NCBI RefSeq assembly: GCF_006345805.1 | Contig: NC_043007.1 | Span: forward strand, 64,232,001 to 64,296,000 | Reading direction: 5' to 3' | DNA from: Octopus sinensis | Lineage: Eukaryota | Length of the DNA: 64,000 nucleotides | Shown: piece by piece, positions 25,701 to 28,700 of the stretch | How positions within the stretch are numbered: position 1 is the stretch's first letter | How the letters are laid out: every line of letters begins with the position of its first letter | Notes under the pieces: model-generated | Databases searched by the model: none | Seen by the model: the letters and a program-made list of their open reading frames with translations, nothing else | What the model was told of the DNA's origin: nothing | Made by a program: the position numbers and the translations under genes

Positions 25701-28700
25701 TTCCTGAATTCATTTTCTTGATGATAGTTTCCTTTTCAAATATCAGCTATCTAACCAGCATCTTAAATTAAACTTTTTCTTCTTGTCTCTTTGGAAATCT
25801 CTTTCTGGTTTCAAATGCCTGCATGCCTTCCCTTCAGCTGTTACATATCAAAATCTCTTATCTCATAAGCTGTTACCCAATCAGTAATGGCACTGAGTCA
25901 CTAGTTATTAAGAATAACATTATTAATTTGTTGTTTGAGTGATACTATTCTTATTTAACCTCAGCCAGACAATGTTGTTAGTATGAGTATTGCTTACCAT
26001 TGCTGTGGTAAACCTGGTCAGCTCTTTTCAAATATTTCTGCAGCACAGAGATGCCGAATCAACATGAGCATTCCATATTATGCTTTTGTCTGAACTGAGC
26101 TCATACCATACAGTCTATTTATGAAGCTGGTCGTATCTTTACCTTTTGACCTGGCAGTACATATTCTAAAATTGGAACGATACAGAGAAAATTAGCATGG
26201 CCCCTGCGCAAGGATGACACGCAAATTCGTGAAGCGTTCCATATGTTTCTACAGCTGTGGTGCTCCAGCATGGCCGCGGCCTTCGGGCTAAAACATTTTT
26301 AAGGATTTAACTAAACACTTTCAAACTTCGGACACTGGTAGAATGTGTCATATAAAACATCTTTTACTCTTAGCATTTTTGTGAAAAACTTATATTTACG
26401 AAGTTATTTCACATTAAAGTTGTCCTATTTCAGTAATTTCAACCAATCAATGACGTGTATTCAGCTGAATAAAATTAACTGCTGTTGTTTCTCTACAAGA
26501 ACTTCCGGCAGTGTATATTTCATTTGTCACTGTTATTTATGACAACCCTAACCTTAAAACCCTAACCCTAAAACCTTAACTCTAACACCCTAACCCTAAA
26601 ATCCTAACCTTAACACCTTAACCCTAATACCTTAAAACCAGTATGAATGATGTCATAAATAATGGTGACTAACGAAAAATACACCACCAATATTTGTTGT
26701 TGACAAACAATGGCAGTAATTTTATTCAGCTGAATACACGTCATTGACTGGTTGAAATTACCGAAATACGAGAACTTTAACGTAAAATAACTTCGTAAAT
26801 ATAAGTTTTTCTCAAAAATGCTAAGAGTAAAACATGTTTTATATGACACATTCTACAAGTATACGAAGTTTGAAAGTGTTTAGTTACAAAAAATTATTTT
26901 TTAAATCTGTAGGTCAAAAGGTAAAGATCCAGTTGGTCATATGGGTTGTGTAGGTGTATTGTTTTGTTGGAATAGATTATGTATATTTTACTATTTTATT
27001 CTCCATTCCAGTGTTCTGGTGGTGGCTGCAGAAATGTGCCACAGCTTAAATCTCCTTGAGATTTAAAGTCGTTGGAAGTTATTTCATGCTTCATATTTAT
27101 CAATTATAACATTTTTTGTCAAATCATTGCACTATAAAAATCAAAAAAAATATTTACCTTTCAGAAACTATGCTGAAGTATCATCCTAGTTTCTCCTATG
27201 CACACCCCTGGAATATTTCATCACCAATTTTTCAACCTGTTCAAATTTTCATTTTTCTCCTTAATACGTAATATGGTTCGGGTTAATTTGAAACAAAACC
27301 CTCAAATTCCATAGTCTCTCAAAGTGTATTTCTTTTTATGGTTTAGAAAGGCTGCAGAGGTAGTGTTTATACTTTCATTGGACCTCTGAGAGTTGTGAAA
27401 CTGATGTAATTGAATCTCATTTTGAACATACTTTTGGAAAAAACATCAATGTGAAGAGAATTCTAGGGGGTTCTCAGGAAGAAGTCAAAGAATGTGTTAC
27501 TATTATTTGTCCTTTTCAACTTACATATACTGTCTTCAAATTTTTTGATACCAAAGTTAATATTTAAGCTTAATATCTTAACATCTTCAATATCAAAAAA
27601 TTGATTCTTAGAAACAAAAAATATGTACATGTTAATTAAGATCTCGGTTAATAATGGATCATTAATCTCCAATATCTTATTACATGGTGATAAATCCAGT
27701 TGGCATGAACTTGCATGAATATATGTAATTTGTTAAAAAGATTCTGTTGTATCTGGGGAGAGTCATTTTCTTTTTGTGCCTTATAATTTAACACACTCAC
27801 CAGTAAAATTTCCACTTATTTATTTTTTATTTTCCTAAAATTTTCATTGCGTCTTGCAACCTTTCCAATAGTCTTGACTATTGAAAAAGTTACAAGATGC
27901 AACGCAAATTTTAGGAAAATAAGTAGAAATTTTACTGGTGAGTATGTTAAATTATAAGGCACAAAAAGAAAATGACTCTCCCCAGACACAACAGAATATG
28001 CTTCAACACATGAACTCACATAAAGAATCTTGCAAACCAAATCCCAAAACAAAATGTTAAAAAGATCTTTTAGAGCAATGTATTTGAAATAAAAAAAATT
28101 TCACAGCTAATTCATATTTTCATTTTAAGTATAGTTTTTATATATTTGCTTATATCTATTGTCGAGTGCATGTGTATTTATGTATATTTTGACTTGTATT
28201 TATATATTTTATATAGATATGTGTGTTACTTTTTTGTATGTATGTTTTTGTCTGTGTGTGTGTATATATATGACTTTTAAAATTGATCTCTGTCTCAGCA
28301 CACACACATTCCTCATTCTATGAACAAAATCTATTGACCAAAAGTAATCTGTGACTGTGATATGTATATAAGATTCCTTTTCTATGTGACTTTCTTGTCT
28401 TTTATCTCAAGTTCTGATTCCCTTCATATTTATATAAAGCCACATGATGGTTAATAAATAAAACAAAAGTGCTATTATAGACTGATCTGTCTCTTAACTG
28501 GTAGTATTACTGGAACAGCTAAACCAGTAAATATAAATATTGTGTGTGTGTGTATAGTTGAAATTTATAGAAAGACAAAAAACGAAGACAGGTATATGTA
28601 CAACAAGCAAGTGTATTAGTTTGACACTTGGGAAAATGAAGAAGTCTTTTACATTTCGAGCCTACTCTCATCAACAGAAAGGAATAAGAGAAAATAAACA

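Follow-up and report, generated by a model that had tools for sequence, protein, structure and literature searches.

A probable U6 snRNA/LINE chimeric retropseudogene in the arm of an octopus foldback element

How does a 5′-truncated copy of the U6 small nuclear RNA (snRNA) come to run directly into the 3′ end of a long interspersed element (LINE) within one arm of a palindromic foldback element? The question is raised by a 155-nt unit at positions 26153-26307 of a 64-kb stretch of Octopus sinensis DNA (64,000 nt; NCBI RefSeq assembly GCF_006345805.1, contig NC_043007.1, positions 64,232,001 to 64,296,000 of the forward strand). This whole stretch is referred to here as the window, and all positions follow its numbering. 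We conclude that the unit is most probably a one-off chimeric retropseudogene, made by a single target-primed reverse transcription (TPRT) on a two-part template of U6 and LINE RNA, with a 24-bp deletion of the target; we put the probability of this reading at roughly 0.82. A preliminary description of the locus, made from the letters of the sequence, had arrived at the same core proposal, a single insertion of a U6/LINE-3′-end chimera that deleted part of the foldback arm. This proposal fits every feature tested, and the coordinates given with it were right to within 1-2 nt.

The U6 part was located by cmscan as a forward-strand match to the Rfam family RF00026 at 26139-26248 (97.3 bits, E 6.1e-24, gathering score 44), the sole family in the window to reach gathering level. 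Over its first 14 nt this match makes the sequence fit the U6 5′ stem by using non-standard pairs; these nucleotides belong to the outer repeat of the foldback. Pairwise alignment to a 107-nt U6 reference places the true homology at 26153-26248, where 92 of the 96 aligned positions agree with U6 over its nt 12-107, in agreement with the earlier delimitation of the copy as running from about nt 12 to the U6 3′ end. The retro-copied sequence carries four substitutions, lacks U6 nt 1-11, starts within the loop of the U6 5′ hairpin and retains an intact ACAGAGA box. Its five terminal U positions read TGTTT instead of TTTTT; since these U-tract positions are present, the copy extends to the natural mature 3′ end of U6. 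The terminator is shortened to TTT. No run of at least four T is found between the U6 part and the LINE segment that follows, and the next such run (26296-26300) lies in the LINE tail. The copy at 26153-26248 has neither the intact 5′ stem-loop nor the terminator of at least four T that mark a functional U6 gene, and no A-box or B-box match within two mismatches is present in 26100-26320. A loose alignment to the 3′ half of U6 is also given by 26038-26080 (CTGCAGCACAGAGATGCCGAATCAACATGAGCATTCCATATT), some 70 nt upstream of the chimera. As a candidate second U6 fragment it was set aside, its local score of 26 being equalled by 7 of 940 control tiles, and the resemblance is probably due to chance.

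Immediately 3′ of the U6 part, and fused to it directly in the same orientation, lies the 3′ untranslated region (3′UTR) and tail of a LINE (26249-26307, forward strand; CTACAGCTGTGGTGCTCCAGCATGGCCGCGGCCTTCGGGCTAAAACATTTTTAAGGATT). This segment carries a predicted GGCC-UUCG-GGCU hairpin and the box GGTGCTCCAGCATGGCC, and ends in T5-AAGGAT(T). BLAST within the window aligns 26252-26300 with 11547-11499 on the reverse strand, in the 3′ end of a second copy of the LINE, at 45 of 49 identical positions (91.8%, E 4e-15). After the matched stretch the chimera has T5 where the LINE copy has T19, and AAGGAT comes next in both, which bears out the earlier claim of a same-orientation run-on into the LINE end with its AAGGAT tail. 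The fused piece begins about 8-11 nt past the LINE stop codon and comprises nearly the entire 3′UTR plus the tail, running to the LINE's own 3′ terminus as does the copy at 11480-11560(-). The chimera tail was aligned with the LINE copy, with the 3′ ends of two related LINEs and with an octopus short interspersed element (SINE); in this alignment the tail of the unit is shared with its partner LINE, as is the case in SINEs. The hexamer CTACAG at the U6/LINE junction is also present in the intact foldback arm (gacCTACAGattt), but its interpretation as leftover arm sequence was rejected, as its CAG has a counterpart in the aligned LINE copy and a related LINE (L001, described below) has CTAC at the start of its 3′UTR. 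AAGGAT was rejected as a target-site duplication (TSD): the motif is missing from the target site in the intact arm, yet it closes both LINE-derived copies.

The insertion site can be read against the other arm of the host element. The foldback is bounded by 18-bp outer terminal repeats at 26135-26152 on the left, where the repeat forms the 5′ flank of the insertion, and at 26911-26928 on the right; the two are 100% identical as an inverted repeat. The inner left arm (26308-26544; BLAST, 88% over 237 nt) resumes exactly where the insertion ends, and the inner right arm occupies 26651-26886; between them the inverted repeats 26308-26477/26717-26886 (170 nt, 94%) and 26472-26544/26651-26723 (75%) are recognised. 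The centre (26545-26650) consists of at least six copies of a 14-nt tandem repeat composed of telomere-like CCCTAA motifs. The unit therefore lies between the outer 18-bp repeat and the inner arm, where the preliminary description had placed it. In reverse complement, the right arm reads ...atctttaccttttgacct, then acagatttaaaaaataattttttg, then taactaaacac...; the left arm reads ...atctttaccttttgacct, then the 155-nt U6 and LINE unit (26153-26307), then taactaaacac.... The 24 nt at 26887-26910, present in the right arm only, can serve as a proxy for the lost pre-insertion sequence, and the arm-to-arm comparison implies that their left-arm counterpart was replaced by the unit. A replacement of arm sequence had been claimed before and stands, whereas its size, given as about 20 nt, is corrected to 24 nt. 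The palindrome extends for about 14 nt beyond the outer 18-bp repeat, with small indels (TATGA..CTGG..ATCTTT; 26121-26942). Neither another copy of the foldback within the 64-kb window nor a TSD of the foldback itself was found, and the element may be a transposon or a local inverted duplication.

Which LINE supplied the tail? Its family is present in the same genome, in the form of a 5′-truncated copy at 11480-11823(-) that retains only the C-terminal ~85 codons of ORF2 with a premature stop, followed by a 54-nt 3′UTR, T19 and AAGGAT (translation, HMMER and the alignment described above). A word-index search with this C-terminus gave no matches, but a full HMMER search of 1.84 billion representatives did find relatives, with 252 protein matches at E≤1e-3. 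The best long match (P0076, 984 aa) is 67% identical over 60 aa and contains an APE endonuclease (Exo_endo_phos) and RVT_1. As the reading frame of the relatives continues past the first stop of the window copy, the real stop codon lies at 11559-11561 and the 3′UTR is only 54 nt long.

Two of the relatives are encoded on contig L001 (from an ENA assembly) and contigs L002-L004 (from Logan), with L001 and L002 being cephalopod-like. Past the stop codon, L001 reads ctactccGGTGGTGCCCCAGCATGGCCGCAGCC...gctgaaaca(ATTAA)n, and the 3′ end of L002 reads ...GTTGATGCTCCAGCATGGCAGC...gaagca(ATTTAAAG)3. The relatives combine APE and reverse transcriptase (RT) domains with a short 3′UTR bearing a conserved box and a short tandem-repeat tail, and have no poly(A). 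The window family ends in Tn-AAGGAT, unlike the (ATTTAAAG)3 and (ATTAA)n of these relatives. Judged from the sequences, the 3′-end architecture of the group is of the stringent CR1/L2 style, and this architecture together with the APE+RT relatives makes a CR1 label for the partner LINE plausible. The DNA that follows the LINE in L001 (3236-3291; ERZ4233750 NODE_5760) we take to be a typical octopus SINE (tttctttactacccacaagggg...); if so, the ERZ4233750 'metagenome' assembly would hold cephalopod host DNA.

The window contains five instances of the conserved box, GGTGCYCCAGCATGGCC, where none is expected. Two of these sites are in the LINE copy and the chimera, and three are in copies of a repeat at 8300-8440(+), 11100-11290(-) and ~16595-16611(-) which we take to be an abundant octopus SINE, a label that does not come from a database match. 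The box is also kept in the 3′ ends of L001 and L002. Being common to related LINE 3′ ends and the SINE, it is likely to be a recognition element for the reverse transcriptase, and its sharing suggests that the octopus SINE is mobilised by this LINE group. RNAfold predicts two small hairpins that are alike in three of four tails, with the GGCC-UUCG-GGCU tetraloop hairpin in both window copies; as the hairpin energies do not improve on those of shuffled sequence, we do not rely on structure.

The LINE copy at 11480-11823(-) is itself lodged in another palindrome of the region 11335-11905, within the (TA)n stretch between the arms at ~11341-11405 and ~11826-11898, and has ATCCTT (AAGGAT in the orientation of the element) on both sides. 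A pure (TA)n target would not hold ATCCTT, so the 5′ ATCCTT seems to be an extra LINE tail rather than one half of a TSD.

How could such a unit have formed? From its anatomy, and from the opposite arm as a guide to the deletion, we infer the following course of events. A LINE with a short structured 3′UTR and a short-repeat tail, stringent in the manner of CR1, would have nicked the bottom strand of the left arm next to TAACTAAAC, and reverse transcription would have been primed on the LINE's own 3′ tail. The complementary DNA (cDNA) would have spanned ~59 nt, nearly the entire 3′UTR, and then passed to a mature U6 snRNA at its 3′ U-tract, with synthesis halting at nt 12, where the stable 5′ hairpin of U6 has its UUCG-type loop. 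Joining of the cDNA to a top-strand break 24 bp upstream would have cost 24 bp of target and left no duplication. The 3′UTR and tail that make up the LINE part of the unit are those required by the reverse transcriptase of a stringent LINE. Two routes could have linked the RNAs of U6 and the LINE: a template jump from end to end, or an RtcB-type ligation, preceding reverse transcription, of U6>p to cleaved LINE RNA. Each route calls for a LINE RNA terminus immediately past the stop codon, and a full U-tract is expected from either. A single genomic copy does not tell them apart. End-to-end template jumping is an established activity of reverse transcriptases of elements without long terminal repeats (non-LTR). 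A jump is slightly favoured over ligation in the octopus, since it is the explanation given for near-identical U6-L2 chimeras of the platypus.

Several points weigh against a single TPRT event on a two-part template. A TSD, the classical hallmark of TPRT, is absent: no abutting direct repeat of at least 5 bp exists around the tail, the U6 part or the whole unit. The same result does, however, dispose of an objection to the chimera named in the preliminary description, an independent insertion of the tail with its own TSD. The 24-bp deletion is deduced from the opposite arm, used in place of a true empty site. The clade label of the partner is a tentative one, drawn from 3′-end architecture and APE+RT relatives, and the predicted 3′UTR hairpins fold no better than shuffles (z 0.06 to -1.4). 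Finally, a single copy is visible, and its one-off status is an assumption.

The assumption matters because the unit could instead belong to a U6-headed, SINE-like octopus family amplified by retrotransposition, with the partner LINE mobilising its members via the shared 3′UTR. The layout of a head followed by a LINE tail is that of SINEs, and the same LINE group apparently drives an abundant SINE with the same box. The U6 terminator is cut to TTT and the T5 at 26296-26300 is the next one, so that the mutated terminator would allow RNA polymerase III to read through to the LINE tail. An automated repeat annotation of O. vulgaris also lists 'SINE/U' (369 kb) and 'SINE/U-L1', the snRNA being left unnamed (PMC13282606). 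Such a family would nevertheless require a solution to the promoter problem: in metazoans the U6 promoter is external, upstream of the gene, and is not copied along with it, the unit has no A or B box, and its head is without U6 nt 1-11. A divergence of 3-4% would by chance produce the lone T-to-G change seen in the terminator, only one copy exists in 64 kb, and the published snRNA-headed SINEs have U1 or U2 heads, not U6 (PMC4494074). We therefore regard membership of a family as unlikely; if it were true, the octopus family would found a new SINE class, the first whose head derives from U6.

Searches for recurrence used a 59-aa reverse-frame translation over the tail, the U6 part and the left flank, together with the 50-aa ATG-started open reading frame (ORF) contained in it at 26119-26271(-). 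Among 5.8 billion proteins, all 74 matches to the 59-aa query were ORFs that overlie ordinary U6 loci in other eukaryotes, with no match reaching the LINE tail, an uninformative outcome as genomic ORFs of this sort from octopus are seemingly missing from the collection. The 50-aa ORF, looked up exactly, gave no match. In metagenome and viral contigs, collections without cephalopod genomes, the tail pattern GCATGGCCNCGGCCTTCGGGCTAAAAC had 0 matches, and a flexible pattern from the U6 3′ end to the box had 10, all in GC-rich bacterial coding sequence and none in U6.

Two further explanations dispense with a chimeric template altogether, and both appear very improbable to us, more so than a SINE family. 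That a U6 retropseudogene and a separate 5′-truncated LINE fragment came to lie side by side by independent insertions is conceivable in so far as both kinds of insertion exist in such genomes, and the junction CTACAG, also found in the intact arm, could be read as a sliver of target between them. The supposed sliver is, however, accounted for by the LINE itself (its CAG is shared with the LINE copy, and CTAC begins the 3′UTR of a related element), and independent insertions would have to place the start of the LINE piece exactly at the natural U6 3′ end while leaving no TSD for either the U6 part or the tail. Moreover, stringent LINEs are expected to leave a U6 RNA unmobilised if it has no LINE tail (PMC4476161). 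A misassembly, or a rearrangement at the DNA level linking a U6 locus to a LINE end, is suggested by the repeat-rich palindromic region, which can mislead assemblers; yet the same foldback arm continues in register on both flanks, the U6 and LINE parts have decayed about as much as the surrounding arms, and the structure of the junction is exactly that expected of a known biological product.

That product, to which a single chimeric insertion would assign the unit, has been described in some detail in vertebrates. Doucet et al. (2015; PMC4476161) reported 40 U6-L2/Mon-1 chimeras in the platypus, 'almost all' consisting of 5′-truncated U6 and a short L2 piece, with TSDs of 1-9 bp in 72.5%, and explained them by template switching during TPRT. 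The same study found U6 chimeras with L1, L2 and RTE in Anolis, 5′-truncated U6 beside RTE elements in the opossum (no TSD; unconfirmed by the authors), and one 5′-truncated U6 beside a CR1-like element in the turkey (unconfirmed owing to a sequence gap). The octopus unit resembles those of these cases that have partners other than L1, in that U6 is joined in sense orientation to a short segment from the 3′ end of a stringent LINE, and it is most like the platypus U6-L2 chimeras in its 5′-truncated U6 and in its TSD, which is tiny or absent in the platypus and missing in the octopus. It differs from them in its cephalopod host, its LINE family and a 24-bp target deletion that can be read from a palindrome arm (PMC4476161). 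The classification of the unit as a U6/LINE chimeric retropseudogene, corresponding to the Group IV snRNA pseudogenes of Doucet et al. (2015), is thus supported. The preliminary description had treated mammalian U6-L1 pairs as the known chimeras; this was too narrow, as cases with L2 (platypus, Anolis) and RTE (Anolis) are published (PMC4476161), and because U6 chimeras with partners other than L1 are already known, the novelty of the octopus unit is smaller than it had implied.

With the mammalian U6/L1 chimeras (Buzdin, 2002; Moldovan et al., 2019, PMC6789731) the unit shares the order of 5′ U6 and LINE 3′ end, a U6 part complete to the U-tract and the same two candidate joining routes; for human L1, RtcB ligation of U6>p to LINE RNA has been demonstrated (PMC6789731). 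The mammalian chimeras usually have full-length U6, a variable and often long L1 piece, poly(A) and TSDs of 7-20 bp, whereas the octopus unit lacks U6 nt 1-11, has a LINE piece made of 3′UTR only, and has neither poly(A) nor TSD. The absence of full-length U6 fits the platypus L2 subtype and not the L1 subtype. As the published non-L1 chimeras have TSDs of 1-9 bp or none, the missing TSD weakens an L1-type hallmark and not the assignment to the class.

Among SINEs, the closest parallel in layout is the crocodilian SINEU, multi-copy SINEs with heads derived from U1 or U2 (Kojima, 2015, PMC4494074). The octopus unit likewise joins an snRNA-derived 5′ part to a retrotransposon-type 3′ part, but unlike SINEU it is known as a single copy, with a truncated U6 head and no promoter. 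It also carries the box GGTGCYCCAGCATGGCC near its 3′ end in common with the repeat that we take to be an octopus SINE. The latter, in contrast to the chimera, is presumably high-copy, and has a 5′ part not derived from U6 and a different tail after the box (…GCAGTCAAATGACTGAAACAAG…).

No report of a U6/LINE chimera in a mollusc or any other protostome was found in the searchable literature, which is not proof of novelty. What is new here is the cephalopod host group and the LINE family, while the anatomy is already known from vertebrates. If the unit is a chimeric retropseudogene, the fusion of U6 to a LINE 3′ end, so far documented for vertebrates and with an analogous non-U6 case in a fungus, also occurs in a cephalopod and with a stringent LINE that has no poly(A). 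This would favour U6 capture as something inherent in non-LTR retrotransposition at large, and not peculiar to L1. Chimeras of U6 and LINEs have, in addition, been proposed as raw material for new SINEs. The palindromic host element acts as a built-in 'empty site', exposing the 24-bp target deletion at integration. To a retrotransposon specialist, a single decayed intronic copy with no evident function will come as no surprise.

Exons of a MARK/Par-1 kinase lie on the forward strand at 19685, 33211, 34513, 36649, 37822, 38966, 41166, 43187 and 51795/52385, and the chimera sits in sense orientation in the 13.5-kb intron between those at 19685 and 33211. Look-ups of window ORFs near the insertion site gave no match. 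The U6 part diverges by ~3-4% from consensus, the LINE tail by 8% from the other copy and the foldback arms by 6% from each other; this similar, moderate decay of all three points to an old and neutral insertion. The copy, having neither promoter nor 5′ hairpin, is decaying neutrally in an intron of the kinase gene.

Some minor features of the window may be recorded. The palindromic stretch at 27834-27915 gave sub-threshold matches on both strands to plant microRNA precursor models, among them MIR6288 with 34 bits against a gathering score of 74; involving two strands, plant families and scores far below threshold, these look like chance. A compound microsatellite of ~1.8 kb and TATG/TATA type occupies 11868-13738 and produces spurious ORFs of 560-620 aa (MYVCIYI...). 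In the kinase gene, the similar tandem exons 51795-51893 and 52385-52465 encode the same MARK segment and seem to be alternatives that exclude each other. A MARK-kinase query retrieved O. bimaculoides XP_014770441 as the nearest named protein, with exons 96-100% identical to the window. This model seems to run on from the 52385 exon into the following intron and to have part of a LINE endonuclease as its end (…GIGPRNEEGTRLLEFCDANNLLI). The window regions concerned are 52466-52657, 55360-55464 and 57276-57440; the intron read-through part is 84% identical, and the public model is probably mis-annotated at its 3′ end.

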